From contig OZ260663.1 of assembly GCA_965285935.1 (NCBI GenBank), positions 93,310,001 through 93,374,000 of the forward strand: 64,000 nt of DNA, in the 5' to 3' direction. The position numbers were made by a program, and so were the translations under genes. This document shows positions 169 to 61,247 of this stretch, piece by piece. Position 1 is the stretch's first letter, and each line of letters opens with the position of its first letter. Below the pieces are notes generated by a model. That model saw only the letters and a program-made list of their open reading frames with translations. It had not been told where the DNA came from and searched no databases. Source of the stretch: Ophelia neglecta. Its lineage: Eukaryota.

Positions 169-2318
169 ATCCCGCCAAGGGTTCTATCCCCCTGTGTGGT
201 ATCGAGACAAGAGAGAAGGTAGTCTACCTCTCGGAGACCGAGGGCGTTCAGATCACCTTAAGCAATCCCAAGACGACCAAACATGGGGCGTATTTCCTAC
301 TTGGTTACGAAAGTGAGTAGGCATACTTAAAGTTAACTCCTAAAAGTCGTTTAGAAAAAAATATTGTTCCTTCATTTGTCGAAAATATTAAGCAAAAAAT
401 GAGCGTAGGGAGAGATTGGTCTAAATGAATACCATATTTACATAATTCAACTTGTGCAACCGTGGAAATGTCACGAAGATAATAGAACTTTTTATTGTTT
501 AATCTTTTATTCCATAACAGTTATAGGGTGTCCCACTTACATACCTCCTGAAGGCGGCGTTGTCACGCGTCACGGGAAAGATATCTCAGTGAGATGCTCC
601 ACATCTGGAAGTGAGTGGCGCTTGTCCTGTGAGGGGTCGAGCTGGAATTCAAAGGGGGCTGTCATAGAATGTGCAGAAGCAGGTTTGTAATACCAGTATT
701 ATATGTCATCGTTTAACGGACACGCGAATAATGCTAAACAATATACGCGGCATTTATTTGCTTTATTATCTGCCTGGCATCAACATTAGGCATGTAAAAT
801 CTGACAGTTTGAATGAAGTGGGAACCCGTACGTTGCCTAGTTAACTAAGCGTATACCCTTAGATTCTGGGGCTGTTCAATACTTGAAACAGTATAGAAGT
901 CTGATGTCCAACAAACCCGCTTGATATGTATGATATTAAGACCCAGAGATTGTTCTGCAAGGACAATTAAAATTTAGATGCATGATTGCGATACAACACC
1001 CAGAGCCAATAGTTTCATTTAACAGCATAACCTATCATTTCTACACGTGAGGAATGTTTCATCGTGAAATGGATTAAATTTGTATTTAACACATTTGGCG
1101 TGAGTAATGCGGCACTTAAAACCAACAAAAAAGGCTATGGCACAAATGACACGCACATATATTTCTATGAATACATATCATTGTGAAGTAGAAAAACATA
1201 ATGGCCGTTGTGCGTGGCAAACCTTCATTCCAAATTGCAGTCGACAGTACACAATATGTTATTTATAATTTCATATGTGTACACTCCATTCATCGTTGAA
1301 AGTTGGTGTCTATCTTGTTTACAGATGGTCCCTCTATGTCAATTGGTGCTCTCTTTAAGAGTGCTCTGACCCTACCACAATGTGAGTAAGCAAACGTTGG
1401 TCATTAGCCTCCAAAATAAATAATTACTCAATTAAACTAGCTTCTCACATTGTAACTTTTTTATAATAAAAATATATTTCAGGGTTACTCATAGTGATCA
1501 TCATCGCTGCTGCTGTTATCGTTGCACTCCCTATACTTGTGATAGGCATATTAAGTTTCCGAAGGTAAGTGCCACGGTTTTTTTAAATTTCATATCTCAA
1601 AATATATACGTACGAGTTAGCCATAAGAGATTTTGTTTAATTAATTGATGGTAAACAGTTCTAAGAATCGCCGTCATACGAATCTTAAATACCTACGTTC
1701 TTTGATATTGTACCGTACATGGCAATATCCTACAAGTTCCAGCCATTTATTCTCAGGCTGGACAATGAACCAACCCTTGCGATTGATCATAATAACATTA
1801 TTATATATGTCCATCATAACAGAAGACATGACCAGGTGATAACGTGTGACCCAAAACGCCAGTTTGACGCTGATGAGTGCTTGTCACATTCGGGGTATTG
1901 TGCAAAAGAGCAGGATCCAATGTTGAATAAAAACGATTTACCGGGAAGATCTGTACCAGGCAGGGAGTATATTACTACCGCACAAAGACACATGGCTGTT
2001 CGTCCGGGCGCTGTGACCCCTGTGACCCCTGGTGATGATATTCCGAGTCTGCCTTTTGTACCGAACGCGTGCTCCGTTCATACAGGGAACAAAAGCATGC
2101 GCGGAAAAATAGGTCAAGACAGTTATCCAGCGGAAGGTAGAAATACTACATTACAGCAAGATTACATCGATGATAAAAATGAGGCACCAATTGATTTGCG
2201 GCGCATGCGCAGTGAGAGCAACAGTAGCGAACCGTTCTACAATGAGGTATACGAGGAGCATACCAATTCGCTTACCAAGTCACCGCAAGAAACATTGATG
2301 CAGAGAGCGAGACGATAA
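169..2318 (+). CDS. Lectin-CUB-CCP-TM receptor paralogue 1 (5'-partial; C-terminus frameshifted)
   Basis: Exons 169-312 (CUB-B), 521-682 (CCP-like), 1325-1381 (stalk), 1483-1564 (TM), 1823-2318 (tail), all with AG/GT and a continuous frame. Upstream exons lie outside the window. A 1-nt deletion near 2290 gives ...QETLMQRARR*. Confidence 0.85.
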
Positions 2319-3389
2319 GCCAAGACCCTATAACGTAGTTATTCATATTTCAACAAATAAGTGCCGGAATATTTTGTGGCCATTTTATTGGAAAGTGGAA
2401 ATTTCGTTTGAGAGGAATGTTGCTATAACAATCTCTCAAAGAATTGGCGCCAGTTTGATATTTATCGCTTATGCTCGTTTGTTCATTCACAACTGTGAGG
2501 ATTACACTGTCCACCAAGTTCACATATGTTACAATGTTTTGTGAAAGATGATTAGAATGGTCTTTAAAAGTTCGTGAATCCTGTTTGGATGCAATGTAAA
2601 TATTAAGTCGAAGCTGGAATTGTGCTTCAGATTGCAAAGACTGTTTACAGAATTTTAAAACTGGTTCAATTGATAATATCCACTTTTCCACTTGCTTATT
2701 GAACCATTTTTGATGCCGCTTATCTTAATCAATTGTTCCATTGTCGTTTATTATGTAAGTATATTATAAACAAAACTATTCCTAATTGACGTGCAGAAAT
2801 GCGTATCGCTGTGGGCATGCTAATTATATTGTTGCCTATTGAAAATAAACTTGATCCCAAAAGTCAAGCTTTCGCATGATCACAGAATGCAGAATGGAAA
2901 TTTTGGCGACGGTAGGTTGCTGGGAAAGTGAAGGACTGAAGCAATCCCAATAAAACGCTCCGGGAACAAAAAAAAACATGCTGATGGTTCACGGAATTGA
3001 AAATAAAGTCGCTATTTTATGGATAATGCTTGCACACGAACATGCTTATATGTTTATCGAAGAAAGATCATGGTCACATATCTGCTTCCAACACGTCGTC
3101 AGTGGGTGTGATTTGTTTCATTGTCATATTACATAGCTCAGATCATTGTCAATAGCATCTAATGTATTCATATGGAAAATGTAAATTAATAAATAGTACA
3201 ATTCAGGAAATGATTTTTATAATTAAACGAAAACGCGTCTCCTTTCACTGAGAAATGATCGAGTGTTTTCCTGATAATAATCTGCATGAGAATGTCTTTA
3301 TTTCCCTTTATGAGCCACACCCGCCATATTGACCTCCTCTCGTTTGCCCTTAGTGGTTTAAATTCTATGTCATTTTGACATAGAATACG

Positions 3390-3505
3390 TGAGCTGCGAG
3401 CATAGCGAGTGCCGCGCACTGCGCCGACGCTTTGTGCACCACCCATTGCATTAAGCCGCGTTGTTGTGTATATTGAGTTCTAATACTAACACTACCAGAT
3501 TGTGA
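3390..3505 (+). promoter_or_regulatory. Conserved upstream element of paralogue 2
   Basis: GC-rich block GCGCACTGCGC...CCACCCATTG (3439-3448)...GAGTTCT...ACACTACCAGATTG, shared by all eight visible gene starts; 189 bp before the ATG. Confidence 0.7.
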
Positions 3506-3627
3506 ACGAACGGTATGTGGAATACAGACATAATGAGCACCGCATAATAAAATGAGGATTATATCTTGCTGATAATAATACAGTTGTTCATCGAAGAAGT
3601 TAGTGTGGTGATATATTCAGTGTTGCA

Positions 3628-6600
3628 ATGGATACCCTGCAGAAAGACTTCATTATTAGCTTGGCGTTAGTGGCAGCTTGGATAACAACAGTTAGCTCGA
3701 GTAAGTACTGCACATTATTATTCAATAACAAAGGACGCCATCATTCACGTGTATCAAGCAAATTCGCGAACATACTCGGCATGCGTCCTTCCTTGTTAGA
3801 ATCTCCATTAACATTACCTCGCAGTACGCCGTCTATAGTCTATACTGTGCTCTGGACTATTGGGGTCACATCGTTTATTTTGGTAGTACTGGAAGCATGT
3901 TTAAGGTGTCAATACTGTCCCGAGAGTTGATCGGTCTAACGTAGTAAAACTGCCTTGAATTGAACGAGGTTCAACAGTATGTTATTGGAAATGTAATACG
4001 TTACCTTCTTATGCTCGGTTAAGGAGTATATAAGGGCAACTATATGTACCTTTTGTAATGAAAACCATTCCTTTCACGATAGCTTCAAACTTGAAATACG
4101 CTTTTCATGACGTTCATATGCTAAACACTGGCCATGGCCATGACCAAAACATTTTCAGGATATAATACCTCAGCTTAAAACCCATATTATAATCTATGAC
4201 ATAATCCTGTACGTCATAGTCTAATATAGAGTTTTAAAAATATTAAATAAAACGCTTTTACATAATTTATGGGGAAACTGTTCTGCGAAAAATAACCGTA
4301 CATTGTTATATGAAAAAAAGGACACACAAAAGACAAAGCGACATCGATAATAAAGATGTTTCATTAAATCCGGGTGAAATCATGGGTAACGGCCTGTCGA
4401 TCCCTGGTCAACAATAGGTAAAGTAGATACAAAATGACTCTTTAGTTGGAAGGCGTCGGATGAAAGACCGTCAGGGAGTGTATAGTAAACTGTAAGTAAC
4501 AGTTTGATTCGGATATGTGATCTTAACACTCGGAGCAGTAAAATACTGCAATAGCTTTGATGATACATTCCGTTCATCCTAGAACAGGGGTCATGTGCAT
4601 ATACCTAATACTGATATAATATCGTATGTTACAGATGCACTCGGTCAGCCACAATAAAAATGTAATTGGTTCACTTTTCAAAGTCAAAATTACACTCTCG
4701 AGGATATTTAATAACCATTTCATTTTCAAAAACTCTCCCCCCACCACCTTGAACCACCACCATCTCGCTGCTCTATGTTTATTAAGAATTATATAGTGTC
4801 ATCTTTAGAATGTAAAATTGGAAGAGCGCTTAGCCCATCATAGGCTATCCTGGGACATATTTCGTACTCGTTTGTCTTGATTTATGCCTGTTTTCTTCTC
4901 AAAGGAATTGTGATTATGGATCTCTCTTAGCAAGGCAGGAAAGCCACAGAATGTTTCACCGCTTCAAAACACTGATAGCATGATAAATCATAAACCCTCC
5001 TGCGATGAGGAGACCAGGAGATTATAAAATGAGGATATTGCGTTCGATACCTTAATTCTTCTAAAGACGCACGCTGCGCTGCGACGCACGGCGTTACGCG
5101 GCGTGGCGAGAACGACGTGCCGTGTAGCAGACCGCCCAGAAGTCTTGCCCTGAGTTGCTTCAATAAACTTAGAAACTATATCAACTGCCGGGCCTAGCAT
5201 GTAAACCCTGCCAATCTTTATTCAAGACGGACAAAATCGCGCATGGTGGTATCTCTGTAACATTTACTTTAGTATTTACTATGATAAACATTCAGTTGTC
5301 GGCTCCGGGCATGGAAACTAGCCAATTATTATAGTTAGTCTGAGATGGGCAAAAATCGAGAATGGGCGTATCTTTGTATATTGTACTTGAATAATTTATT
5401 TCTTGTTAACTTTAATTAAAAGCGCATTACTTTCATCCCCATTATGGTACTCTTCTTAACAACTCTCTCATCTATACCGTGAAGCTTGAGTATTGAAACA
5501 GGCAGATATGAATATACTAAGAAAGGCAAGGCAAAGATTTTTTTCGGATAAATTCATTCTTACCATTTATCTGACACGGTATATTATTCTGACTATGTGT
5601 CCTATCATGATATCTGATTGACCCCATTTTCAATTGGCCATATGTAAATTAATACCAAAACAAAAGTAAATCTACTATCTATATAAGGAAATGTATACTC
5701 GAATTTATAACTTAACTTGTTGGCCAAGCCTAAAAAAAGTTTTGCGGAATTTTGTATAAAAATGTCCATAGTTTTATGAGTGATATTACACCGGCTAAAT
5801 AAGTCATGTACTCATGTTTGTTTCTAAATCGACCCATGTCCTTTTAATGTATATAAATGTCTTTTTTATTCCAAAGTGTATTCCTCGGGATTCTACAATC
5901 CACTCATTTGATGTTTTACCGGCGGCGCGCCCTCGCGTGAATGGTGTACGTGATATCAGCCGTTTTGGCCTGAAAGAAGTGCATCTTATTAATTAACGCG
6001 AATGCTGAATTGTAAATAAATACACTGTGTGTAATTTGTCTCGGTATGTACTTGGGTTGTGTGTTTCCTATTTCCCCTAATGGAATATATCTACATATAT
6101 TAAATGCATGTCTTTCATGACGTTTCAGCTGTACAGGACATTTGCTACTTTAATAAATACAACGTAACCTGTGCAGAGAACGAGGTTATACAGATGGAGC
6201 ATGCAAACTACGGCCGGATGTCAGTAGGACGCTGTATACCGGAGGCTCATAAGATGGGATGCCAGGAAGACGTGCTGGGCTATTTGGACTCAGTTTGCTC
6301 CGGGAGACAATCCTGTCATCTCGAACTGCCAGATAAACACCTGGCGGCCGGACATCAGCCTTGTCCTCGAGGGCTAGAGTCATACCTGAAGGTTGAATAC
6401 AAATGCATAAAAGGTGTGTAAAACAGATAGTTTTCAAAATGTGAATCTTTGGATTTGAATATGGGGATCCTTATCTCAATTCAAAGCCACATCCGATGCA
6501 GCACACGGGCTGTCCGACTGCATAACTGAACCTTGAGGTTTAAACTAGAGGTAGACATAGATTCCTTTGCTGACTTCTCAGATCTGCAAAAAATAAGTGT

Positions 6601-9600
6601 ATATTTTTGCAAAATTCAATATATGGCTGCAAGCAAATGACAATAAGGGAAGAATTAATTTCCTGGGGGATGTACGAAAAGAAATGCTTAAAACTGAAAT
6701 ATTCATATAAAACTGTTGAATGAGCAAGCGATAGATTAGTTAACGTTCCGTTTTAAACGAACATACATGTCATTGTTTTGATAAAAGTTTATTTCTTTAG
6801 TTGTAATTTCCAGTACAAGTCTACCCATCACCGTGTGCAGACAACCCTCTACGCGTCTCGGGAACGCAAGGCTTGCTGGCCAACTTCGTAACATCACGGA
6901 CTAGTCAGGGGTCTTCAGGATGCCCCTGGGAGGTCCGCGGGTCACCAGGGCAGAAGGTCCGTCTCACGTTACACGATTATGGGGTGCGGCCGCCTCACAC
7001 TGGAGCTCGGCGGCCGGGGTCCCTTCCACCAGATAGGTTGGGTATTTGCCACATATACGCAAGGGTAGCAGAAGGTTGGTAAATTTAGTAGCGAATTCCA
7101 TCCGTATAAACTGTTATCGGAACTGGTTTAAATCATAATGACTTGTGTACTATATCTTTTGTCGCCTTCAACAAAATTAGCCCATGTTTTACGATTATTT
7201 TCAGTAATGGAGCAGGGGATTGATGTTTTTGGACAAATTTAATGGTCTATTTCCGATAATGTATAAGATAATGTATTTATATTATCTCGTTTAATTATTT
7301 TGCCTAGGCTGCCAGGTAACCTCTACAGTGTTTTGCTGTTTCTTACGTGAAAAAGTGCTCATTGTATATTTGTGTTTTAGTTAACACAATCGCTGAAATA
7401 TCAATTAAACTTGTCGTATCATAACAAATAACAAACCATTTCAACCCAGATCCCGCCAAGGGTTCTATCCCCCTGTGTGGTATCGAGACAAGAGAGAAGG
7501 TAGTCTACCTCTCGGAGACCGAGGGCGTTCAGATCACCTTAAGCAATCCCAAGACGACCAAACATGGGGCGTATTTCCTACTTGGTTACGAAAGTGAGTA
7601 GGCATACTTAAAGTTAACTCCTTAAAATCGTTTAGATAAAAAATAATTACTCCTTCTTTTGTCGCAAACATGGAGCAAATGATGAATGCAGGGCCGAGAC
7701 TGCCCTAAATGAATACCATATTTAAATAAATCATTCCATGCAACCGTGGAAATGTCACGCAGATAATAGAACTTTTTATTGTTTACTCTTCTATTCCATA
7801 ACAGTTATAGGGTGTCCGAATTACCTACCTCCTGAAGGTGGCGTTGTCACGCAACACGGGAAAGATATATCAGTAAGATGTTCCACATCTGGAAGTGAGT
7901 GGCGCTTGTCCTGTGATGGGAAAAGCTGGAATTCAAAGGGGGCTGTTATAGAATGTGCAGAAGCAGGTTTGTAATACGAGTATTATAAGTCATCGTTTAA
8001 CGGACACGCGAATAAAGCTAAACAATATACGCGGCATTTATTTGCCTTGTGATCTGCCTGGCATCAACATTAGGCATATAAAATCTGCCAGTTTAAATGA
8101 AGTGGGAACCCGTACGTTAACTAAGCGTATTCCTTTATAATCTGAGGCTGTTTATGTTTGAAACAGTATAGATGTCTGATGTCCAAAAAACCCGCCTGAT
8201 ATGTATAATAGAGAATGCTGCAAAGACAATTAAAATTTAGATGTATGCTCGCGATACGACACTCAGAGCCATTAGTTTCATTTAACAGCATAACCTATCA
8301 TTTCTACACGCGAGGAATGTTTCCACGCGAAAAGGATTTTATTTGTATTTAACACATTTGGCGTGAGTAATGCGGCATTTAAAAACCAACAAAGAAGCTA
8401 TTGCACCAATGACACGCACATATATTTCTATCAATACATATCATTGTGAAGTAGAAAAACTTAATGACCGTTTTGCGTGGCAAACCTTCATTCCAAATAG
8501 CAGTCGACAGTACACAATATGTTATTTATAATTTCATATGTGTACACTCCATTCATCGTTGAAAGTTGGTGTCTATCTTGTTTACAGATGGTCCCTCTAT
8601 GTCAATTGGTGCTCTCTTTAAGAGTGCTCTGACCCTACCACAATGTGAGTAAGCGAACGTTGGTCATTAGCCTCCAAAAATAAAGAATTAATCAATTAAA
8701 CTAGCTTCTCACATTGTAACTTTTTCATAATAAAAATATATTTCAGGGTTACTCATAGTGATCATCATCGCTGCTGCTGTGATCATTGCACTCCCTATAA
8801 TTGTGATAGGCATATTAAGTTTCCGAAGGTAAGTGCCACGGTTTTTTAAATTTCATATCTCAAAATATATACGTACGAGTTAGCCATAAGAGATTTTGTT
8901 TAATTGATGGTAAACAGTACTATGAATCGCCGTCATACGAATCTTAAATACCTACGTTCTTTGATATAGTACCGTACATGGCAATATCCTACAAGTTCCA
9001 GCCATATATTCTCAGGCTGGACAATGAACCAACCCTTGCGATTAATCATAATAACATTATTATATATGTCCATCATAACAGAAGACATGACCAGGTGATA
9101 ACGAGTGACCCAAAACTCCAGTTTGACGCTGATGAGTGCTTGCCATATTCGGGATATTGTGCAAAAGAGCAGGATCCAATGTTGAATAAAAACGATTTAC
9201 CGGGAAGATCTGTACCAGGCAGAAAGTATATTACTACCGCACAAAGACACATGGCTGTTATTCCGGGCGCTGTGACCCCTGTGACCCCTGGTGATAATAT
9301 TCCGCGTCTGCCTTTTGCACCAAACGCGTGCTCCGTTCAAACAGGGACCAAGAGCATGCGCGGAAAACCAGGTCAAGACCGCTATCCGCCGGAAGGTAGA
9401 AATACCACATTAAAACCAGATTACACCGATGATAAAAATGAGGGACCAAATGATTTGCGGCGCATGCGCAGTGGAACTAACACTAGCGAACCGTTCTACA
9501 ATGAGGTATACGAGGAGCATACAAATTCGCTTACCAAGTCACCGCAAGATAACATGGATGCAGAAAGCGAGACAATAAGCCAAGACCCGATTGCTGCTAA

Positions 9601-9607
9601 TACGTAG
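3628..9607 (+). CDS. Type I membrane receptor paralogue 2: signal peptide, SUEL-type lectin, CUB-like, CCP-like, TM, Tyr-motif tail (529 aa)
   Basis: join(3628-3700,6129-6413,6814-7074,7450-7593,7805-7966,8588-8644,8747-8828,9082-9607)=1590 nt, open frame, canonical splice sites. SUEL: ANYGR, C..DVL..LD..CSGRQSC, PC...YL.V.Y.C. CUB-like: CPWEVRGSPGQKVRLTLHD...FLLGY. TM: WLLIVIIIAAAVIIALPIIVIGILSF followed by RRR. Confidence 0.9.
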
Positions 9608-10839: not shown

Positions 10840-13800
10840 ATGGATACTCTGCTGAAGGACTTCATGCTTAGTCTAGCGTTCATGGCAGCTTGGATAACAA
10901 CAGTTAGCTCGAGTAAGTACTGCACATTATTATTCAATGACAAAGGACGTCATCTTATACATGTATCAAGCAAATCGCGAACATACCGGGCATGCGTCCT
11001 TCCTTGTTAAATTCACCATTAACATTACCTCGCAGTACGCCGTCTACAGTCTATTCTGTGCTCTGGACTATTGGGGTCACATCGTTTATTTTGGTAGTAC
11101 TGGAAGCATGTGTATTTGTTTGAGGTGATAATACTGTCCACAGAATTGATCGGGTTAACGTTTAAAAACTGCCGTTAAGTGAACCAGGTTCACCAGGGTT
11201 GTAAATATATTCCCACCGTATGTAAGTGGAAAAGTAATACATTACTTTTATTTGCTCAGTGTAGGGATTTATAAGGCTAATGTATGTACCAATTGTGATA
11301 AAAATTGGTCATAACCATTCTTTTCATGAAGGCTCTGTAATGGATACTCGTTATTCTTGACCTTAATATGATAAACGCTCGTCAGAGCTATGACCAAAAT
11401 ATGTTCAGCAAAGCATGCTTCAGCGTAACACCCTTGGTATTTTTCTATAAGATATCCCTCTGCATCATAGTGTAATATAAAGTTTTAAAAATATCAAATA
11501 ATACACTTTGGCGAAAAAAATTCTCGGGGAAACTTGTCTGCGAAACATATATGTTCATTGTTATGCAAACAACTAGGGGCCATGTGCATATGCCTCATAC
11601 TGATATAATATTATATGTTTACAGATTCACTTGTTAAGGCACAATAAAAGTGAAAATGGTCCACTTTACAATAAAGTAAATATTATATTGCAGTTTCGAG
11701 GATATCAAATAATCTTTTGATCTTTAGGGCATTGTTTGGACCTCCCACATCCCCACCCCTAACCTCACCTTTGATAAGCCATCTGTCTTTGCAACGAAAG
11801 AAAACCACAGAATGATGTACATCTGCTTTCAAACCCAAATAGCATGATATATCATATACCCCCCCCCCCACCCAACCCCCCCGCAATGATGAGATTTTAT
11901 AATGAGGATTTTCCGTTCGATACCTTTACTTATTCCAATACGCACGCTGCCCTGTAAGGCACGGCGTAACGCGGCGTTGCGAACTGCAACGTGGCGCTAA
12001 ACGTGTAGAACAAGCTGTGCGTCGAGTATTCCAGCACGTATATACTTCTATAAATGAAACTGAAAGAATATGACCCCCCCCCCCCCCCCTTCACGATGTA
12101 ATTGTGCAATTTGTTCAGGTGGAGGTAAAAGTCTTAAGCTTAAACACGAGTTTACAAATTGGAATCATATCTATGTAATATGCGGGTAGTAATTCGAACT
12201 TTAAAGTGTGAATATGTGTCGTTTTGTAATATAAAATGCCGCGATAATTGTAGACCCCATTGTCAAACACACCAATATATATAGTTAATGAAGCACTTCC
12301 TCTTAATCTTCGCAAATACATGGATAAAAATTGCCCGTAACATGTGGCTGCACTGTGAAGAATGCAGAATACATTTTCAACTGCAGGTCCTAGCATGAAA
12401 ACAAGCCAATGAAAGTAGTCAGTTATCAAAGATGGATAAAATCGTACATAGTCGTATCTCTGTAACATTCATTTTACTTTCATTATTAACTCAGATATAC
12501 ATTCAGACGTCTGTTCTTGCATGGAAATTAGCCATTTATTATAGTTAGTCTAAGATGGGCCAAAATAGCGCATAGTCGTTTCTCTGAATTTAACATTTCT
12601 TTTACGCGAATAATTAATTTCTTGTTAACGTTAATTTAAAAGCATATTACTGCCATCCTTATTATGTAACTCTCTTATACACCGCTCTGGCATATCTTAC
12701 TGTACGTAAACACATACGGCGATTGTATAATTTCTCTCTTTAAGTTTGATGGAATCCTTCAAGGGAGTCCTCAGGTCCATAAGGCGGGGGTTATACTTAA
12801 ATAAACTGGTGTTGATTTTATTCGAATAAAGATAACCCCTATTCTATACACAAGTATAGCAGGAAGCTTGAGTATTGAAACATGCAAGTGGGAATATACT
12901 GAGAAAGTAAGCAAGGTAAAAGAATTTTTTCGGCTAAATTCATTCTTATCAACGATCAGGCAGATCTGACATGGTTTATTATTATGACTGTTCCCTATCA
13001 TGATATCTGTTTGACCCCTTTCTTAATTTGTCGAATGTAAAATAATACAAACATATTTTTAAGTATATACTATTCAAATACGGAAATATTTACTCACCAA
13101 ACCGATAATAAATTTGCTGGCCAATCCTGAACTATTTTTGCCTTATTTGTAAACGTCGCCGATAAATCCGGTTGATACATAGTTTTTGTGAATTTCAATA
13201 GTTTTATGTCTGAAATAGCATCGGTAAAATAACTCCTGTGCTTAGTGTTATTTCTAAATCGAAATGTGTCCTGTTAATATATATAAATGCCAATACTTTT
13301 CCAAAGTTTATTCCTCGAGATTGTTCTCATTTGATGTTTCCAGGCGGCGCGCCCTTGCGTGAACAGCGTACGACGGCATCAGCCGTTTTGGCTTAAAAAT
13401 TATGCTTATATTTGTTGAACGCGAACCTGAATTGTAAATTATTATACTCTCTGTTTTCTTCCGGGACTGTACTTTTGTGGAGTGTTATCTATTAAATACA
13501 TGTCTTTCATGACGTTTCAGCGGTACAGGACATTTGCTACTTTAATAAATACAACGTAACCTGTGCTGAGAACAAAGTTATACAGATGGTACATGCATAC
13601 TATGGGCGGATGTCTATAGGACGCTGCATTCCGAAGGACGTTGGTTTCAGGATGGGATGTCAGGAAGACGTCTTGACCTATTTGGACTCAGTTTGCTCCG
13701 GGAGACAATCATGTCATCTCGAACTGCCAGATAAACACCTAGCTGCCGGACATCAGCCTTGTCCTCGAGGGCTAGAGTCATACCTGAAGCTGGAATACAA

Positions 13801-23700: not shown

Positions 23701-23809
23701 CAATGAGGTATACGAGGAACATACCAATTCGCTTACCAAGTCATCGCAAGAATACATGGATGCAGAGAGCGAGGCGATAAGCCAAGATCCGATTGCTGCT
23801 ATTACGTAG
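17797..23809 (+). CDS. Lectin-CUB-CCP-TM receptor paralogue 4 (529 aa)
   Basis: join(17797-17869,20323-20607,21008-21268,21644-21787,21999-22160,22790-22846,22949-23030,23284-23809)=1590 nt. Ectodomain almost identical to paralogue 2. Confidence 0.9.
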
Positions 23810-47070: not shown

Positions 47071-47152
47071 GGATTCTCGTGGTGGTTATTATAGCCACTG
47101 CTCTTATCATAGCGATCCCTATAAGTGTGATCGGCATTGTAAGGTTCAGAAG
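47071..47152 (+). other. Orphan TM exon of the same family (alternative exon, or remnant of a deleted paralogue)
   Basis: ttttttcag|GG ATT CTC GTG GTG GTT...TTC AGA AG|gtcaac. It is 82 nt like every TM exon here and encodes (W)ILVVVIIATALIIAIPISVIGIVRFRR. No neighbouring family exons were found. Confidence 0.8.
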
Positions 47153-47389
47153 GTCAACCAATAGTTTTATTTTGTAACTATTGATATAACATATACGTGC
47201 GTTCAAAAAAAAGAAATGCCCCATCAATGTCCCTCATGTTGCTCATTTCCGACGACTCGAGGCTCAGTAAGTGGTAACACGAATAATACAAGATCATCGA
47301 TATAACCTTATACATTTATACTTCAGGACTCGCGGCACAGGGATATCGATCGTAACAAATGCCCAAAAGGAAGCTGATCGTAATTTCGG

Positions 47390-48132
47390 AATGAAATAAA
47401 CTTCCCTTTTGCATCAGACTAAGTCAGAGTAAAGCTATTTAAGAAACGCATCTCCTCCGCAACCCAGAGACCTCCCTCCTGGTTTTTCATGGGCTCGAGA
47501 CCTACACAAATTTTCTTAGCGCAGTGCCGGCTGGGCTGTTCTTGCTTAAATGAGCATCTTTATCTTAAACACTGTATATCGTCCCCTGCATGTCAATGCG
47601 GTGCAGTCAGTGAAAGCGTTAGTTACTTCTTTTTATTTTGTGAAAAATATTCCCGCCCGCGACTTCCACTATTTGAAAAATTCAATCGTCATTACATACC
47701 CAGCAATAATCATGTTTAAACAATTCTCCATGGGCCTGCTTTAACTCCTTGCCGGAGTTTGTAAATCTAATCGATGTCTACGTCAGCAATTCTGGCCGCT
47801 TTGCCAACTAATATACTGTTTAAATTATATTATTGATTTCATACATTTTCCATTTCATTCATCGATTCGCCATTGTACATATATTCTTAATCATCTTTCC
47901 TTCGTTTGTCATATTATTTTCACAGTATTTGTGAAACAAAATAGATGCTTAAATTAAGATACATACCTTCATCCATTCTTTTTCGAACCTATCGGTGCAT
48001 GCAATATTTGTTCTTATTCTGTTGGCGCATGTTATAGATGTAATATAAACATTTCTGTTGTTTTTACGTGATACTTACTTTTGTTAGCATTTGCTATTGT
48101 AAAAATCACGTTAAATAAATATGTTTAAACCA
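47390..48132 (+). mobile_element. 5'-truncated non-LTR retrotransposon (CR1/L2-like) relic
   Basis: Broken frame ...FKKRI...PSWFFMGSR...LAQCRLGCSCLNEHL....ISSPACQCG..ESVSYFFLFCEKY...SGRF, typical of the C-terminus of LINE ORF2. Followed by an AT-rich 3' UTR ending AATAAATATGTTTAAACCAAA. Confidence 0.68.
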
Positions 48133-49995
48133 AATGTAAGCTGATAAGTGCATGCCATATCCGAAAGGTGCATATAATAAGAACGGACCATTGCTGGCTA
48201 ATATTGATACATAACAAATGTCTCCCCGGGAAGAGAGTACACAAGTACAGGGGACAGACACATGGCATCAAGCCCGGTAATCGTGAAACCAGGGCAACAA
48301 CACCAACCCATAAACTGTGATTAAAAAAATTTAAAATAGTTTTTAACAATTTTACGAAAAGTTAATCTTTAAGGGGTGACAAATCATTTGTCTCAAGTAA
48401 CCGAGCAACCTTAGGAAGACTATTTGACAAGTTTTAGGCAAGGGATCTGTTGTTTTGAATTGTTAAAACTTTGCTCGAACACCTGGCACTTTCCCAGAAT
48501 CAAAATTAGGTCTAAAAAGCGCTCAAACACAGGCTTTCGGGCCACGCACACCAAGAAACAAATAAAATGTTCATCCAGTACTTTTAATAGTCTCTGAATT
48601 GTCTTTACTTGTCTCCGAATTGTATTTGAATTCTCTCCGAATTATTCGCATTAGTTGGCGTATCAATCTATCCAAACTATGCTTTAAGCAATCTAGTCGG
48701 ACCATCTGGAATAGACTTGTGAGGTAATAAATTATGTAAATATACAAATAATGAAGGATGGAGTAGCGGATGATGAGTAGTTTGAAGGGCTAACTGGTTA
48801 ATTAGGGTGGAATAGAATCAGCCAAGCAATAAGTAAGGCCCCAAATTGTGCTGCCAGGCTCGCCATGAATCGCTCAAGGCTGGATGCCAGGCCGGACGTA
48901 TTGAGTTCCAGTCTACTCCGATCAGAGGAATGAAGCTTAACGTGTGGTCAGTTGAATTGAAGATTACTTCATATTAATGCAGGGTTTCTACTTTAATATA
49001 TGATTGAAATATATTCCTTTGGAGGGAATTCTAGTTGGATTTAGTGGGACGGCGACGAACTGGCTAATTATCTTGTAGAAAAGTGTCAGCTTTGCCCTAT
49101 TGTCTGCCAAGGTCCTCGAGCATGGATGTTAGAAAGTTCGTGCTGTGATATCTATTTGTGACATACCACGCTGCTCTCCGGATCATATTGATGTAATGTG
49201 TCAGTGGTTTCCTCGCTTCTTGAGGTGTTATGGTGAAATTTGTTGTCGAGTTGATTCTTTCAGGCTAACAAATTGGGCTGGTTTTGTATAATTTATTATA
49301 CAAACACACATTCGCTTAGTTCTTTATAATATAGGACTATCTATGTTAACTCACGGTACATGAGGCTTCTGAACTGGGTAAAGACTGGCATTATGTGAAT
49401 ATTACAAAAGAACGTAATTCAATCATATACTCAAGCTTTATCCAATAAACCCAGTAAGGTATGCTTACGGCTGGTCCAACCAACACTCTTAGATGAACTG
49501 ACCGGCTACACATGTATTGGATTTGCATAAATAATGCATTATAAATTAAGTTTCGAGTTGGTATTTTTTAACATTCGGGATCTCAGTAATACAAACATTT
49601 ACGCGAGTGTATCACCGATGGCATGCACGTGGAAGGTCAAGGGTAATACCAATAGACCGGAAATCATAGTACACAGAAAACAAAGACTAACGCTATACTA
49701 GGACGTTGATTTCATTGCTTACAGCTATGACAACTTTTTTTGTCAATTGTTCTTGCTACGTTTTTTTGGATTCAGTTATTTCCCCTAGAAACCTTTAATT
49801 TCCGAGTATATCTTAGATTCGGAAAGGACATGTATACCGATTTTATTGGAATACACATTATTTGTTGAATAGCTGTGGCAATCGTCAATTATATAGCTGT
49901 CTGTTAAAGTCTGATCCTTAATTGCCATTGAATAATATAGTCGTTGTGTATTAGAATCTACATATAATATTGTTTCGGTCAAATATAACATAAAC

Positions 49996-51557: not shown

Positions 51558-54500
51558 ATGGATCCGCTGCTGAAAAACTTCCCTCGATGTTTATTGGCAG
51601 CGGCGATGTGGATTACGTTAGGAAGCACGAGTAAGTACTGTATATTTAATGTACATTGACCAAAAAACGCCATCTTGCTTATCGCTTCCTAGTCCCGCTT
51701 TATCCGTGTTTTTTTATTTTTTTATTGAAAATAAATAATGATAACATTTACTTACTGTCAAATCCCCTTATGGAAGGTTAATAAGTATGAACTGCGGAGT
51801 TCTTTGCAATAGGAAAATGAATAAAAACACCCTCTTGCTAGGAATGGTATCTTAGTTACAAGGTCAGCTTAAAACCTGACCCATACAATAAACTATTCAA
51901 TTGATTATAAATGAATATATTTGAAAATACATTATTGGCAGGAAGCAGATCTGTATTGATACTTTTGGAAATACCCGAAAGGGTCGAAACGCAATTCTCC
52001 GTGAGATAACATAAGATCCCCTGCCGATATATGGCTCCCAAAAATATCCCAGCAATGATACACGAAAGCCTTTCATTTTTTCAGAATGCGCTGGCCAGGG
52101 CCTGTAAATGGTGAAACATCTTAGTTGTGTTGAATTCTGTCAAGTAATGTCCTCTAACTAAAACCATAGTTCGTTGCCCGAAAGAACTCGCACTCCTTCG
52201 ATTCCATCTTTCTATTATATATCTATCAATTATCTATCAATATTTTATTGTTTGACAGCGGCTAGACATTTGCAAGCTCTATGATGGAACTAGCAGCGCC
52301 GCGTGTTTGGCGCTAAATAGAGAATGCAATTTGAATACATAGCTTCGAAACTACATAGAGAAACTTTCTATCAATATTCGCTGGCTCTAATGTATACCTT
52401 AAAAAGACTAGATGGCACTTAATGCCTGACAAAGTATCCTTTCTGCCTAGTAAGAAGTTTCTTACAGAGAAGGTACAACGGCATTCAAGACTTTGTAATA
52501 TGAATTACAGGGCGGCTTACAGTGCGATTTTGTACAGCACAGTGGTTTGCAAATGCCAAAATGTTCAGAGTACATATTTGTAAAAAAAAAAGGTACTATG
52601 TAAATATTTATACAAATGTATGCTACAAACATTCTTGTCTTCACCATGGAACAGCGGATGTCTTTGATTTGATTTGAGTGTATCTAATATTGCGCTATGC
52701 AGCATATGCAGTTTTCGTTCGGTCTCATTATCATTTTACCCGAGTCGGCAGGCAATGAATCGTGATGAATCCCACCATCATAGGGCATTTCCAAAGAAAT
52801 ACATGAACAGGTTCTTATAAGTTAAAGGCTCTGAAAGCTAGCTGAATTCAATGTTCTTTATAGCTTAATCATGCTAGAATACCAATGCATTTTTTTTTAA
52901 AGTAGAAATATGCTAGAATATTAATGCATTTTTTAAATGTGGAACTATGAAGCCATATCCAGTATTTGCTCCGTGTTCCTGTTGGTCGTACACCCATACA
53001 TGGAAGTGAGATATATTAGGCAAAATACATTAATAGCAAAAGGATTGTTCACCTAAATTTCGCACAATCCGGGATTGTTTGCTGTTTGTACCTCTCACTT
53101 ACTCTTCCACGCTATCTAAACATAAACTGAAGTAGATCCCTGACAGATAAGTGCCGTGTGCAAACTGGGCCAGCCTAACAGATGGTTTACGTACAACCTA
53201 CTCAACCCCTGATGGGCAACTAAGGGTTTGATGAAGGTTTCATTTACAAATAGGAACATGCCAGATGGAGCTTTTACTGACATGTTTCAGATATCAGTGT
53301 GAAATATCTTGACTTAACAGAAAGACATACACTTAAGGACATCATTTCACTATCACTATATAAACCAAATGAAAATAAATCCTAAACTGATATTTTGTCC
53401 AAATAAATGAAGTCCGTGTATTGGTATAAAACAGAAATATATTTTAGTTTCTTATATGAATTATCAGGTTAGTTGTGTCCTATTGCGTCTAGAAGTATTG
53501 ATTTCGTTTACTAATTTTACAGAAGAACATGATATTTGCTCCTACGAAACAATTCATCCTACGTGTGGAGACGCGGAGGTAATCCAGATGGAGCAGGCGA
53601 AGTACGGGAGGATGTCAGTAGGACGATGTGCACCGGATGACCTGGGTTACATCGGCTGTAAGGTGAACGTATTGGAGTACTTAGAATCTATTTGCTCGGG
53701 AAGACAGACTTGTCAGATAAGCCCCTTGGATAGGCAGCTGATGTCAGGCTACCAACCCTGCCGGCGAGGTTTGGAGACCTACCTACAGATACAATACAGT
53801 TGTGTCCAAGGTAAGCAAATGTACACAAATAACACATTTTCGCCATGAAAATTATAAAAAAAAATGTGTATGCGCCAACAGTAAGGAAATACATTACCTT
53901 GCTTCCTAATCTAGATCAAATGATGTACTTAATGCTTTAAACCTAATAGTAGTAACTTTTATATGTAACCCGTTGCTTTGGGATCTGCATGACCAAAAAA
54001 AAAAGATAAATTATTTCACAATCTGGTTAATATAACTGGTGTAATTTATGCCCTTCATCTAGCTCAACTTGAATCACACGTCTACTTCTTTCCGCAGTTA
54101 TATATCTGGCAAGTGGTTTCGATGTTATCATTGACAATATAAATTCATGATATTGACCCGGAAATATAATTTTAAAGTTGCCTTTTTGGAAAACCCAACT
54201 TTTAGCCTATACAAGGGAGCCATCATTTTGTCATTTTCCTGTTATATTCAAGGAATACTGAGACTTCCTGTACTCGTCCTTGACTTTTAACCTCAATGTC
54301 AAGTCATTGAATACTTATAAACCTTCACTGCGAAAAATACCCATATACAACCATTTTGATCCCCAGCTATTAAAGGTATAAAAATTAGTTTCAAATATCA
54401 AATATCTAGTGATCTAGATGTGCCTTAATTTGTAGCTGCAAAATAGTAAATCCGCCTAAAGCCATCTAAATAGTCACTGTCTATAATTACCTATTTCACA

Positions 54501-57360
54501 ACTGGGCTCATAGTTACCACTATATAAACCACCTCTATAATCAGACCACCTGTCAATCCAGACCACTGATATTATGAATGTGCTGTTCAATTTTAATGTT
54601 AAATAGCTTGTCTAAACAGACCACTTCCAAAATCGGACCAGTATTTTCCAGTCCCTTTGGTGGTCTTAATTCACAGGTTTCACTGTATTTGTATCGGTAA
54701 ATATTCCGAACCTACATCATGTTTCATCATTTAATCTTTTATTTATTGAACATATCTGTTTAATAATTGTGCCTGATCGAAAAATGCACAAAGTAGGTCA
54801 CGACAAGGCTGTATACTTTATGTTACTTTTTGTAAGAATCAATCGGAGACACAATATTCAGCTTTTAATTTCAGTGTATGTGCCTGCAACACCGTGTGGC
54901 GACAAACCCATAGAGGTCTTGGGACGAAAAGGTTTGCTGGCCAACTTCATCACGGAACGGACGGGAAAGGGATCTGAGGAATGTCCATGGCAGCTCAGAG
55001 CGTCCGAAGGACAGAAGATCCGACTCACGCTACATGACTTCGGCGTATGGACGCCTCCAATGTCCCAAGGTGCCGGCTCTGAAGATCATGTGAATGGTAG
55101 CAGGTTGCCGGACACATCGGATAATTGTCATCTATACGCCAGCATCAAAGACCGTAAGTTAAGCTCACCAAATGTTTTAATTGGACAAAATGTAATACGA
55201 TTTTAACAAGGGAAGGATTAAATATATTCAAATGGTCCATTATTTTTATAATTTTAAGAGGGGGAGTCATAAACTATTATTCTAAGCCAAAGCGCATTCT
55301 AAAACGGTACAAAATTAATCCTTTCATTTTTTTATAACTTGATACTGAATAAAGAAAATAACCATGCATTTAACATGAAAATATATTAATTGGAAGTCTG
55401 AATCAGTGATTGTATAATGAAATGTAATGTTGCTCGCAAAATCCGTTCTCTGCAGATAATGTGCTAGTGAGTTTTGTAATAATTGTGTTTTACCATTTTA
55501 CTTCTTTGATACCAGCTACCACCCAGGGTATTGTTCGCGTCTGTGGGGGTGAGGCACGAGAGAAAATAGTATACACCTCAGGTACCGAGAGCCTGCTGAT
55601 ATACGTGAACAACCACAAACATTCCCGATTCCAGTCATATTTCCTACTGCAGTATGAAGGTGTGTGATTCAACTAAGATAGAAAAGTTGGCATTTGTTTT
55701 GCCTTTGAAACAATGGTCAACTCCATTTACTATCACATTTTTGACATCAATGTTTTTATTGCAGTAGTTGGATGTCCAACGTACAACCCACCAGAAGGCG
55801 CTGTTATCGACAAACATGAAAACGAGATTTCGGTGAGATGTCCCGATTCGAGAAACAAATGGCTAGTTTCGTGTGACGGTACCAAGTGGAAAGCAACGGG
55901 ACAGGTTACCAAGTGTAATGTGCCAGGTTTGTTAACTAACTATGTTAGAAATGATAAGCAAAGTACGCCAACTTTGGCAACAAGGACTTAATTTAAGCAA
56001 AGGCATGGAATGGAATACAAGTTCAGGATCATAAATTCTATAGGTTGTCGGGGTTCGAAACTCAGCTCATCGGACATTCAATGCTACATCGTCTGATTAT
56101 AGGTGACTCCTCTGTGTCCAACGGTGCTGTGTTTCGTGGATCTCTGACCTTACCACAAGGTGGAAAAATAAATCACTAGTGTTCAAATTTAAGATAAAAG
56201 TAACCGATAGTTAAAATGGAAAGTTTCATTTACTTTTTATGGAATGTAATGAAGAGAAATGAAAATTGTGCCAAACATTGTCAGCTATGTGTATAGCTGT
56301 GTATAGTATAGTATAGTATAGTATGTGTATAGAATATTCAAGCCTGTTAGTTTCATTTGAACAAAATTATGCTTTTGTTTGCTGTTAAGAATTTGATTAA
56401 CTTCGAACTTCACAATAACAAGTTTTCGTCTGTTTCTAGGGATAATGGTTATACTCATCATATCTATTGCTGTTCTAATAGCTGTCATTATACTTGTCTT
56501 CGGCGCTATTAGTCTCCGGAGGTTAGTGTCATGTTTCTTATATTAACGAAAATGTCACCACAGTATGCACCGACTCGTAACTTTAGATTAAACATTTCCA
56601 TAAGCCCATATTTAATACCCTGCATCATATAAAACTGTGGAGAAGGTTGCACACTTAATGTAATGTAGAGTAAAATATTTATATTGTTTAACTGAGCCTC
56701 AATCTAAGGCGAGATGTCCGCAAAGACTTTTTTAAATAGAACTCTTAATGATAATTTATTGTCACTATTGTTTCTCTTTCTTCGATAAGATATAGATAGG
56801 AATTTCGATGGTTGCTCTATTGCAGGAAACGAAACGCAGCAATTGAATTCATGACGAATCCTCTAATGAACTCAGAGAACCTCACGTCACTTTCGGAATA
56901 TTCCGCTAAGAATAATGTTCACATACCTATGACTACACAAGCGCAGCAGTCTCAACTGGGAAGAGAATATACTTGTACCCCACGTGGACAGGTGGCGGTA
57001 CCTGGCGGGGCGTTTTTAACTGATGGCGAATTGATGTCACTGCATCTTCCACCGACGACACCATACCCAGACTCCTGTAACTGCTTCCTTCATGATTCAT
57101 CACGAAACGAAATTCCAGCAAGGAAGAGTAACAATACGTATAGACCTCCATACACTGAACATTTGTTTGATTCGCCAAACTTCTTATGGCGCAGTTGCAG
57201 TGAAAGTCACACTACAGAACCGTTCTACAACGAGCTGGACCCGGAGTTCACCGGAGTTGGGATTATCAGTGGGACAAGGCGGGTGCATAAGGACTGTGAT
57301 AATGTGATATTTCGACCTGACACCCCAGTGGCTTCAATTCCTGAGGCTGTTTCCCCCTAG
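51558..57360 (+). CDS. Lectin-CUB-CCP-TM receptor paralogue 7 (539 aa, most diverged complete copy)
   Basis: join(51558-51630,53523-53810,54875-55153,55516-55659,55765-55926,56103-56159,56440-56521,56826-57360)=1620 nt. Cys patterns, exon lengths and phases conserved. Confidence 0.88.
54510..54687. mobile_element. One-ended relic of a non-autonomous Tc1/mariner/pogo-type element
   Basis: Ends GGTGGTCTTAATTCACAGGTTTCACTG-TA (reverse complement TA-CAGTGAAACCTG..., a common TIR type) with internal AGACCAC repeats; no matching other end seen. Confidence 0.4.
56291..56332. repeat. (GTATA)n microsatellite
   Basis: gtatagctgtgtatagtatagtatagtatagtatgtgtatag in an intron of paralogue 7. Confidence 0.8.
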
Positions 57361-58389: not shown

Positions 58390-60409
58390 ATGGACATACT
58401 GCTGAAGAATTTCTCCCGAGGAGGCTTGGCGATTGTTGCAATATGGATTACAATGGGAAGCTCGAGTAAGTACTCGCCATTTATTATACCGTCTCAAGGA
58501 ATAATACGGCAAACAGCTAGGAACTCGGTGTTAACAGCTTAGTCGAATAATTAGTGACGTAAAAGAGCAAGTCCTTAATTGTATGATCTACCGTCATTAA
58601 TGTTTTTCTGCTCACAATTTTTTGTCTGTTTGCAGTCTCCTACTGTGCTTGTAGGTTGCATTGAAATCGAATTGTTTTATTGATGAATTCGTTTCAAATC
58701 CCATATACTAGTATCATTACTAGTATCATTATATGAATTACAACACATAGTCGTATATATCATATATCAACCCTCTATACAATTTCTTTCAAGTCGCCGG
58801 ATAAGGGTGAAGAATTCTATGAATTCTCAGTTTTCACAATCGGATAATGTGCCATCTAAATGTTCTTTGTCCGTGTGTGTGTGTCAACGGGCACGTACAA
58901 GGCACAGTCTCGCGTGGACTACTTGAACGAATGTATTAATATATTCATTTGACTAAGCCACAAATTCCAGAACAAAGTACACAAAGGCGCCAACAAAGGT
59001 TAAACCTATATATTCGGTATCCATCTTGATTCAGTGATAGATTTAAACCCGATCTTTAATCTTTAACCATACTCCTATACCCCATAACCTCTTAGGTTCT
59101 ACCTTTCATCGCTATCCTGTAAGTAGCCTTAAAAGAGGTGCAATGAAACAATGGAACTAGAATGTAATTGACAAATATTAAGTTGAGTAATATTTGTTCA
59201 GAAAAGATGTCCCTAATATTTGATAATTATATAATTACCCAGATACCCAGTTGGGAATTGCATGTATACGAAATATTTCTTAAGAATATTTTAATGTTAT
59301 TCGGGTTAAGTATAAAACGGAGGTGTCTTGGTTAGGATCCTCGCTCAGCCCTACGATTGAGTATAATATCTTTTTTTTTTTTTTTGCACTCAATGCTTTA
59401 ATAAAAATGGCAACGTTTTAGCCCATCCTTTAATCCCCTATCCCCCTCCCCCTACTTGCCAACGGTGACAAGAACAGACTACGGACAATATGTGTGAGGA
59501 CAACAGGCGTTATGACCTCAAATTAGGTTCTTATCTCGCACATAGTAACATTTTGTAGACGACCAATTCATTTTAAGATATAAACCTGACGAGTCATTCG
59601 TTACCTAGGATGTGCTGTTAATCGTTTTGTTATCTGATAGTATAATCATATGTTGACAAATACAAGATAGCACTACGATGTGACTCTCGCAATATTTATC
59701 TGCGGTGGACAGCTGTTACAGTTATAGTAATCTGACCCTGTTGTTCATAACACTCTGTTATATTACTGCAGTATCTCCCTAAAAAAAGGCCAACATTGCA
59801 TATTTTGAAACGTTCATTTGAATTTGATGCTGCGTTTGTGATATAGGCAGAATTTTTATTTTACAATTTGTTCTTATTTGTTCGCTAACAAATTTATGAA
59901 CATTTATTGAATGTGCACATGCATTTATATTGCCGTCATACTTCCTTCAAAACTGGTGAAGAAAGATTTGATCTCGGACCCAGTAATACTGTTATCGGTG
60001 GTAATGTAAAATAATTTCTGGTTACGATAAATTAGTTTATACGTTGTCCGTATCATGATAATCATGTATTGGTGCATTACCCTTATAGAGGCTTACAAGG
60101 TTCCCCAGTCAGTGCGCGGACATTTAGCTAGCGCCTGTCGGTTTGGGTTTATAGCATGATGAGCCAGCCAGTCGGATGACGCTATCGGGCTCATCGCCAC
60201 TTGCCGGGTTTCTAGAATATTTGTTCGTTTGGCAGTATAAATGGTCTTTCGTCGAGAAGAGTAATTCCAAACCATCTTACACCGAACATATATATGAGCT
60301 ACCAAAGTTTCTACGGCGCACGCGCAGTTTGAGCGAAAAACACGACCCTTTCTACTATGAATATGACCCGGGACACACAGGCTTTCACAGTGAGGAACCA
60401 CGAGAATAA
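58390..60409 (+). pseudogene. Paralogue 8, internally deleted
   Basis: Intact signal-peptide exon 58390-58465 (MDILLKNFSRGGLAIVAIWITMGSS, gtaagt donor), then only the 3' part of the tail exon at ~60255-60409 (SYTEHIYELPKFLRRTRSLSEKHDPFYYEYDP). No lectin, CUB, CCP or TM exons in the 1.8 kb between. Confidence 0.75.
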
Positions 60410-60914
60410 ATATATTTGCGTGGACACAATTTCCCATTCTTAATTCGCCGACAGAAGGTTTGGCAAACGGTGTAAGGATCTTACAGGTGTCAATTTTGAA
60501 GAGTTCTATAACTCTTATAGGATAATATAAATTTTCAACGATGTAACATTTCAAGCTTGTGAATGCGTTGGCTTCAGACACATATATTATGGAACACGTA
60601 TCATGCTTGAAGTGCCATTATATTTATATGCGACTTTCCCTCAGACATATGCCACATGGAATCATTTCATTAACTCCCACCCATACTCGCTGGATTTGTG
60701 AGATATAGTTAAAATGAACAAAGTCAAATAAACTATTGCCAAAACAACTCCTTGTCAATAACAGCGACAGATTATAAATGATACTTTCCATTTTCATTGT
60801 CATCAATATATCTCCACTTAGCATTCCGTTTTTCGTATGCCCCCCGCAAAGTTCATCGAGAGACTTGGCCAGAACCTAAAAGTTACCGTCCTTTTTTCGA
60901 TCACAGATAGAGTA

Positions 60915-61040
60915 CGAGAGCGGAGTGCCGCGACCAAAGCCAGTGGTGCGCACTGAACCTGCGCTTCACACACCACCCATTGCATTGCGCCGCCATGAAG
61001 CGTACGTCGAGTTCTAACAATGACACTCCCAGTTTGGGAC
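60915..61040 (+). promoter_or_regulatory. Conserved upstream element of paralogue 9
   Basis: CCACCCATTG at 60973-60982, 202 bp before the ATG. Confidence 0.68.
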
Positions 61041-61174
61041 TGAACTCTTAGCGGAATATCGCACTATTACTCTGGATTATAGCATTAAGTTTATAGTCTG
61101 GAAACTTCGTTATGGCGATTTAGTATAGAGGGGAGTGTTTGGATTACAATTCATATTGGTGTGCATTCATAACC

Positions 61175-61247
61175 ATGGAGAGACTGCAGAAAAGATACAT
61201 AATGACCTTGGTGAGCGCGGCACTATGGATACCACTGGCAAGCTCGA
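61175..61247 (+). CDS. Paralogue 9, signal-peptide exon (remaining exons not in the window)
   Basis: 73-nt exon MERLQKRYIMTLVSAALWIPLASS ending AGCTCGA|gtaagt, as in the other copies. Confidence 0.75.

Follow-up and report, generated by a model that had tools for sequence, protein, structure and literature searches.

Which genes make up the unit of ~7.2 kb that recurs along the plus strand of a 64 kb stretch of the Ophelia neglecta genome, how far do they extend beyond it, and what might their products do? The stretch analysed, hereafter the window, is C5:93,310,001-93,374,000 (contig OZ260663.1 of assembly GCA_965285935.1) and carries no runs of N. Exon-by-exon mapping identified nine same-strand loci of a single 8-exon gene and the remnant of a tenth (Table 1). 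The gene encodes a receptor whose ectodomain combines a SUEL domain with CUB-like and CCP-like modules. The window is the distal slice of a tandem cluster of ~95 such genes spanning ~1 Mb of one chromosome, and the receptor family at this locus is genuine, very large, for the most part intact and under constraint. We read the cluster as a lineage-specific expansion of annelid recognition receptors that are probably immune, a reading built on sequence comparison that we favour with some reserve.

The coding exons of copy 2 measure 73, 285, 261, 144, 162, 57, 82 and 526 nucleotides (nt) and yield a product of 529 amino acids (aa). Intron phases are 1,1,1,1,1,1,2, and AG/GT dinucleotides are found at each homologous boundary, the same boundaries being used across the copies of the window. 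Copies 2 to 7 are whole and open (515-539 aa). Copy 1 has its exons 1-3 just upstream of the window and is open over its whole length (527 aa). The first-pass annotation, made from the letters of the window, had described nine same-strand 8-exon copies with constant exon sizes and phases and a clustered family of type I receptors, both of which were confirmed. Its tally of six complete and open copies, one deleted and two cut by the window edges was also correct, short only of the remnant found between copies 6 and 7.

The array is far larger than the nine copies initially counted. The tail exon has 94 matches in the 762-Mb genome, all located at C5:92.53-93.52 Mb and 86 of them without an in-frame stop, which raises the estimate to ~95 genes over ~1 Mb. 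The genes form two divergent arms, one on the minus strand up to ~92.92 Mb and the other on the plus strand from ~92.94 Mb. The SUEL exon gives ~95 matches within the span of the cluster, with 52-100% identity, among the 150 listed of 211 candidates. Full annotation covered 264 contiguous kb (the window and 200 kb more) and used per-exon profile hidden Markov models (HMMs) with phase-aware splice refinement. It defined 38 loci, all encoded on the plus strand. Full-length open genes account for 26 of these (468-544 aa), two loci are cut by the ends of the stretch and about ten are fragments or broken copies. The sizes of exons 1 to 7 are 73, 282-291, 255-285, 144, 162-168, 57 or 84, and 82 nt, exon 8 being variable. 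Acceptors are AG in 182 of 182 cases and donors GT in 181, a tally that holds partly by construction because the refinement step demanded such sites. The lone other donor is a GC (GCGAGT) at the conserved position in exon 4 of gene g3 (L002:7350-7493).

Beyond the cluster the same SUEL search, among the candidates listed, found more distant exons (36-50% identity) elsewhere on C5 (34.8-35.2, 67.9-68.06, 93.585-93.616 and 104.98 Mb), at many sites on C2 and at 16.3-16.5 Mb on C1. The genome thus holds more than 200 SUEL-exon candidates, and the outlying SUEL clusters are devoid of the tail exon that characterizes the cluster family.

Domain searches were run on single exons, and the joined coding sequences were used for translation, alignment, substitution-rate analysis and local blastp. 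The proteins begin with a signal peptide and a SUEL domain, continue with a putative CUB domain and one putative CCP, and end in a short stalk, a single membrane helix and a cytoplasmic tail that is ~170 residues long. The SUEL domain, proposed from inspection of the sequence, was recognized by Pfam in exon 2 (PF02140, E 8e-13). A profile of 23 exon-3 peptides had eight matches among PDB sequences, all to CUB proteins: cubilin (the best, E 0.005), NETO2, TSG-6, four enteropeptidase heavy-chain entries and PCPE-1. The exon-5 profile retrieved nothing meaningful from the PDB sequences. Exon 5 (162-168 nt, phase 1-1) has invariant C3, C25, C36, C50, W41, G2 and G38 in 23 paralogues, and its G-C-P...C...C-x-G-x-x-W...C pattern fits a CCP. 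Folded with the paralogue alignment it gave a four-strand model (predicted local distance difference test score, pLDDT, of 80), whose top Foldseek matches are nearly all CCP modules (MASP-1, C6, factor H, CR1, CD55, beta2-glycoprotein). A full-length homologue from Arenicola marina (see below) was also folded, and its model matches MAP-1 (CUB-EGF-CUB-CCP), the rhamnose lectin SUL-I and the Lec domain of latrophilin, as well as NETO2, the MASP-2 CUB and C1s CUB2-CCP1. Of the claims of a CUB and a CCP domain, the exon profile and the fold and homologue-model matches are in favour, and the silence of Pfam on the single exons stands against them.

The direct succession of a putative CUB and a putative CCP recalls CUB2-CCP1 of C1r/C1s/MASP and the CUB-sushi membrane proteins of SEZ6/CSMD type. 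In contrast to these, the proteins studied here have no protease domain and no EGF, a single CUB and a single CCP, and a CUB domain with a Pro/Gly-rich insert of 20-27 residues. This insert, encoded by exon 3 (e.g., window 6970-7050), lies between the conserved LTLHDYG and C-x-IYA strands; indels are frequent in it, and no other part of the ectodomain varies as much in length.

Synonymous divergence (dS) is 0.07-0.22 among copies 1 to 4, ~0.35-0.39 from these to copy 5, ~0.95 between copies 5 and 6 and ~1.7 between copies 6 and 7. Divergence therefore climbs from left to right, as had been stated, while the term near-identical for the leftmost copies was an overstatement save for a 3.2-kb tract common to copies 2 and 4. 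The ratio of nonsynonymous to synonymous divergence (dN/dS; pairwise Nei-Gojobori, pairs with dS <0.6) is 0.22 for the SUEL domain, 0.25 for CUB, 0.33 for CCP and 0.53 for the tail, with 0.18 in stalk and helix. When changes were counted on the tree by parsimony, the overall ratio was 0.44. Excess replacement was found at 3 of ~540 codons at p<0.1 uncorrected, fewer than expected by chance and none significant, in a parsimony codon test that is crude and with synonymous sites that are saturated between clades. The majority of copies are intact and evolve under purifying selection. The suggestion that variable loops reflect diversifying selection is thus not sustained, dN/dS being well below 1 in every domain and no codon reaching significance.

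These values also bear on two other explanations of the locus. An assembly artefact, in which alleles or collapsed repeats are taken for paralogues, or a dead array made mostly of pseudogenes, could account for the 98-100% identity of the tract in copies 2 and 4 and for the rise in depth over exons in DNA runs. It is largely refuted, and retains hardly any probability, by neighbours that are separated by a dS of 0.07-1.7 and whose introns and tails are distinct, by 26 open loci out of 38 with dN/dS well below 1 and by depth peaks that fit k-mers shared among paralogues. The second explanation is that the proteins serve a broadcast-spawning worm as receptors in gamete recognition or allorecognition. 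Spermadhesins contain CUB domains, which speaks for such a role, as does a large tandem locus with fast turnover. SUEL lectins, moreover, were first found in sea-urchin eggs (PMC8878817), an origin that points in the same direction. Positive selection is typical of such systems and is opposed here by dN/dS values of 0.2-0.5 with no significant site, and we hold this explanation to be quite improbable.

The SUEL domain keeps its fold and has lost most of the canonical residues that contact sugar. C5, C14, C35, C44, C56, C62, C78, C92, Y27 and G28 are invariant in 22 paralogues and R29 is found in at least 90% of them. Alignments with SUL-I, LAT-1, CSL2 and ADGRL3 confirmed that the eight cysteines and the YGR motif are retained, and the SUEL profile matches SUL-I (E 4e-19) and the Lec domain of LAT-1 (E 3e-12). 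The primary sugar contacts of CSL3/LPHN-1 are the Glu that follows the first Cys, the YGR Tyr, the KYL Lys and a main-chain Gly, and CSL3 contacts in addition an Asn and the Asp of DPC (Ogawa et al., PMC3269628). In the cluster family the DPC-x-GT-YKYL motif is replaced (consensus QPCPRGLESYL): the KYL Lys is Ser, Ala or Thr in all copies, the DPC Asp is Gln, Glu or Lys in all copies but one, and the position of the Glu that follows the first Cys is occupied by Tyr, Phe, Leu, Val or Ser. The annelid homologues lack the same sugar-contact residues. As these three contact residues are lost, canonical rhamnose/galactose binding is not to be assumed, and the label of lectin that the family had received is doubtful. 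Compared with the rhamnose-binding (SUEL-type) lectins and the Lec domain of latrophilin, the eight-cysteine fold and the YGR motif are shared; the domain is here membrane-anchored together with CUB and CCP modules, rather than secreted or carried by a G-protein-coupled receptor.

No near-identical protein turned up when 1.8 billion representatives were searched by HMMER with the SUEL exon. The search identified several proteins of 420-500 aa that are ~30% identical to our models over the stretch from the SUEL domain to the membrane helix inclusive. Exact look-up showed one of these to be UCK81586.1, [quoted passage not shown]. The others are three hypothetical proteins of Capitella teleta, five proteins from Logan assemblies of public runs and one from JGI/IMG. 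A search with the A. marina protein added the A. marina receptors 13 and 14 and a hypothetical protein of Helobdella. Local blastp of the models against named members of the family (P0078, P0151 and P0152) gave E values of 1e-36 to 1e-52 over ~340-400 residues with 27-33% identity. Against UCK81586.1 and its relatives the E values were 1e-42 to 1e-52 from the SUEL domain to the helix. One Logan homologue is found on intronless contigs of 1.9 kb in two runs; these contigs therefore derive from mRNA, and a relative of the family is transcribed and spliced in another organism.

By these similarities the genes are assigned to the annelid "Gal-binding and CUB domain-containing receptor" family. The domain order is consequently not unrecorded, as first thought, since GenBank names receptors 3, 13 and 14 in A. 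marina and hypothetical proteins of Capitella and Helobdella share the layout. Literature searches on the GenBank family name found no text. PMC9985225 and PMC9410094 cite a coelomocyte transcriptome paper (Stanovova, Gazizova and Gorbushin 2022, PMID 35438249) from which the A. marina receptor names probably stem; the connection between accessions and paper is one that we infer. The genomic layout appears to be undescribed, with related worm genes already named in GenBank: ~95 genes are present in 1 Mb here and no genomic organization is on record for A. marina. The A. marina receptors share with the cluster proteins the signal peptide, the SUEL domain, a putative CUB with four Cys, a CCP-like module that has four Cys plus a Trp, and the single membrane helix. 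Their tails also have a proline-rich patch, spaced from the membrane much as in the cluster proteins. The proteins of C. teleta (ELU10382.1, ELU09978.1, ELT90059.1) and Helobdella robusta (HELRODRAFT_190717), which are unnamed and unstudied, have the same ectodomain order and cysteine framework with ~22-35% identity and different tails.

Several short motifs are conserved in the cytoplasmic tail in an alignment of 26 proteins: K-E-x-x-P-M-L, an acidic dileucine-like pattern; R-E/G-Y-T/I-x-T; PPLPxPP; RRxRS, followed by Ser/Asp-rich residues; and PFY(H/N/R)E(L/V), present in 24 of the 26 full-length genes. The tail of the A. marina homologue has a pLDDT below 50 in its AlphaFold model, which suggests that it is disordered. 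The tyrosine-based tail noted at first inspection is thus found as a conserved tyrosine motif, and an assignment to the immunoreceptor tyrosine-based activation (ITAM) or inhibition (ITIM) type is not borne out. The tail conforms to the generic YxxPhi pattern and matches neither the ITAM (YxxL/I, 6-12 residues, YxxL/I) nor the ITIM (S/I/V/L-x-Y-x-x-I/V/L) consensus. It has a single PFY(H/N/R)E(L/V) motif, whose position -2 is Pro, His or Ala, and in the sequence YNEVYEEH the second Tyr is only 3 residues on and lacks L/I at +3. In genes g23 and g25 (C5:93,255,822-93,278,083) a frameshift in exon 8 ends the protein ahead of the PFYxEL motif and the gene is otherwise intact; they represent either naturally occurring variants with a truncated tail or pseudogenes of recent origin.

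Taken with the names of their relatives, these features favour the reading of the cluster as an expansion of recognition receptors. The proteins would be exposed at the cell surface, most likely on immune cells (coelomocytes), and instead of rhamnose or galactose they may bind a protein or some non-canonical glycan. Their tail might couple binding to internalization and/or signalling, its candidate motifs being YxxPhi (PFY-H/N/R-E-L/V), the acidic ExxPML, the PPLPxPP proline patch and the RRxRS site. The role of SUEL-domain proteins in lophotrochozoan immunity and cell recognition was called elusive (PMC8878817). These two fields are poorly understood in lophotrochozoans and the locus is about as large a single-family receptor cluster as could be wished for in an annelid. 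It opens the questions of which ligand is bound by a contact-poor SUEL domain, of co-expression versus choice of one gene per cell, and of how duplication and conversion shape such arrays. The tie to the named Arenicola family points to coelomocytes as the first tissue to examine.

Several points weigh against this reading, from the domain assignments to the proposed cell type. Pfam made no call on the CUB half-domain exons or on the CCP exon when these were searched singly, and in two homologues the CUB scored just under the Pfam threshold. The CCP fold matches of exon 5 are weak (E 0.3-2, TM 0.45-0.65), in line with its length of 53 residues. Apart from the proline-rich patch the tails of the A. 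marina receptors are unrelated to those of the cluster family, featuring HIWETPLP and FLYHPGRP where the latter have PFYxEL, ExxPML and RRxRS. The roles of the tail motifs as putative adaptor, SH3/WW and kinase sites are drawn from pattern matches and general knowledge. The link to coelomocytes is likewise taken from the GenBank names of a ~30%-identical family in another species, plus its presumed source study. No RNA runs were found for the organism, and the three runs with sequence, from one sample, behave as DNA: over the gene their introns are covered, no splice joints are present and the contigs are short, breaking at differences between paralogues. In these runs the summed contig depth is 3-10x higher over exons than over introns (window 6020-6419, 7420-7619 and 9020-9419). 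The peaks are not evidence of RNA, since they are most simply accounted for by k-mers shared among paralogues.

The proteins might instead be auxiliary or adhesion subunits of neuronal receptors, like the CUB/CCP membrane proteins NETO and SEZ6. The NETO2 CUB domains are among the top matches of the homologue model, and the order of CUB, CCP, membrane helix and short-motif tail resembles that of SEZ6-type proteins. The 95 paralogues far exceed known families of auxiliary subunits, no LDLa domain or repeated CUB/CCP units are present, and the relatives that bear names seem to originate from a transcriptome study of immune cells, if its attribution is correct. A neuronal function of this kind therefore seems unlikely to us.

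The genes of the cluster are preceded by a conserved element. Alignment of the 500 nt upstream of 30 exon-1 loci defined a core of ~119 nt with three conserved blocks, of which the CCACCCATTG block is invariant in all 30 loci, including two remnants. Mean pairwise identity is 75% in the core, 38% further upstream, 56% between core and ATG and 68% in exon 1. The CCACCCATTG motif occurs 8 times in the window, for 0.02 expected, and always 182-202 nt ahead of an ATG. A strict composite pattern is found 30 times in the genome, each time within the cluster and on the gene strand, and its reversed control was not found at all. Recurring open frames had raised the possibility that the upstream block is a coding exon of the minus strand; this was rejected, as there is no 3-nt periodicity, indels are not in multiples of three and the frame varies from copy to copy. 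The absence of codon periodicity and the freely varying length indicate that the element is non-coding. No RNA family was identified in the window by Rfam.

This arrangement recalls the clustered protocadherins, in which a conserved sequence element precedes each variable exon. The two systems have in common dozens of tandem paralogues and a conserved promoter element before each unit (30 of 30 units here). They differ in that the genes described here have no cadherin repeats and no shared constant exons, each possessing its own eight exons including membrane helix and tail. The likeness is the basis for an explanation in which each neuron or immune cell would stochastically pick one or few of the ~95 genes and the ectodomains would discriminate self from non-self. 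It is favoured by the number of paralogues at one locus, each with a private conserved upstream element confined to the cluster, and it is because these promoters are private and conserved that it survives. The complete set of eight exons and tail in each gene argues against it, and a conserved promoter also fits simple co-regulation; we regard it as an outside chance. If correct, the expression of one or few genes per cell would amount to a combinatorial surface code of annelid immune cells or neurons built from SUEL-CUB-CCP modules, a diversity system comparable to protocadherins or to clonal receptors.

For the expansion of recognition receptors that we favour, the array itself shows how it has grown. 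The tree of the family has four clades plus g36 (copy 7). Members of two clades are interleaved on the chromosome, and distance in the tree has a weak correlation with distance along the genome (rho 0.29). At C5:93.12-93.25 Mb the clade with an 84-nt exon 6 and the clade with a 57-nt exon 6 alternate along the chromosome, and partial copies consisting only of exons 5, 7 and 8 lie between some of the genes. A tract of ~3.2 kb is 98-100% identical in copy 2 (~5858-9098) and copy 4 (~20025-23265) across exons 2-7 and the introns, while on its flanks identity is 88-94% (promoter, exon 1 and most of intron 1) and 81-92% (exon 8). In agreement with these limits, dS is 0 over exons 2-5 and 0.19 in exon 8. 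The tract indicates recent gene conversion or exchange. The array expands through tandem duplications that involve one or two genes at a time, gene conversion patches it, and copies are lost by deletion, frameshift and transposon insertion. The birth-and-death evolution proposed for the array fits the gene remnants, the transposon insertion and the young duplicates, gene conversion being observed besides.

Table 1. Positions of the gene copies, exons and upstream elements in the window (numbered from its first nucleotide).
Feature	Position	Strand	Description
Copy 1 (g29)	169-2318	+	Exons 4-8: 169-312, 521-682, 1325-1381, 1483-1564, 1823-2318
Copy 2 upstream element	3380-3515	+	Same element before copies 3-9
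CCACCCATTG motif starts, copies 3-9	10649, 17606, 24895, 38132, 51361, 58189, 60973	+	
Copy 2 (g30)	3628-9607	+	8 exons, 529 aa, open
Copy 2 exon 1	3628-3700	+	Signal peptide
Copy 2 exon 2	6129-6413	+	SUEL domain
Copy 2 exons 3 and 4	6814-7074, 7450-7593	+	CUB-like domain, jointly
Copy 2 exon 5	7805-7966	+	CCP-like, four-cysteine module
Copy 2 exon 6	8588-8644	+	Short stalk
Copy 2 exon 7	8747-8828	+	Hydrophobic membrane helix
Copy 2 exon 8	9082-9607	+	Tail, 175 residues
Copy 3 (g31)	10840-16536	+	8 exons, 537 aa
Copy 4 (g32)	17797-23809	+	8 exons, 529 aa; exons 2-7 and introns 98-100% identical to copy 2
Copy 5 (g33)	25077-37132	+	8 exons, 515 aa; stop ~20 codons before that of sister copies
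Copy 5 intron 5	28701-36126		7.4 kb versus ~0.6 kb in sister copies
Copy 6 (g34)	38315-45882	+	8 exons, 531 aa
Remnant g35, between copies 6 and 7	47071-48324	+	Exon 7 (membrane helix) 47071-47152 and piece of exon 8
Copy 7 (g36)	51558-57360	+	8 exons, 539 aa; exon 8 at 56826-57360
Copy 8 (g37), remnant	58390-60409	+	Exon 1 58390-58465 and tail (exon 8) piece to 60409; exons 2-7 gone
Copy 9 (g38)	61175-61247	+	Exon 1; exons 2-3 ~12 kb downstream, past the window end

The large size of intron 5 in copy 5 is attributed to the insertion of a mobile element. A minus-strand open reading frame (ORF) in this intron (31706-32038) has a sub-threshold match to the helix-turn-helix (HTH) of a Tc3-type transposase (E 0.002), and the ORF adjoining it has a weak match to HTH_23.

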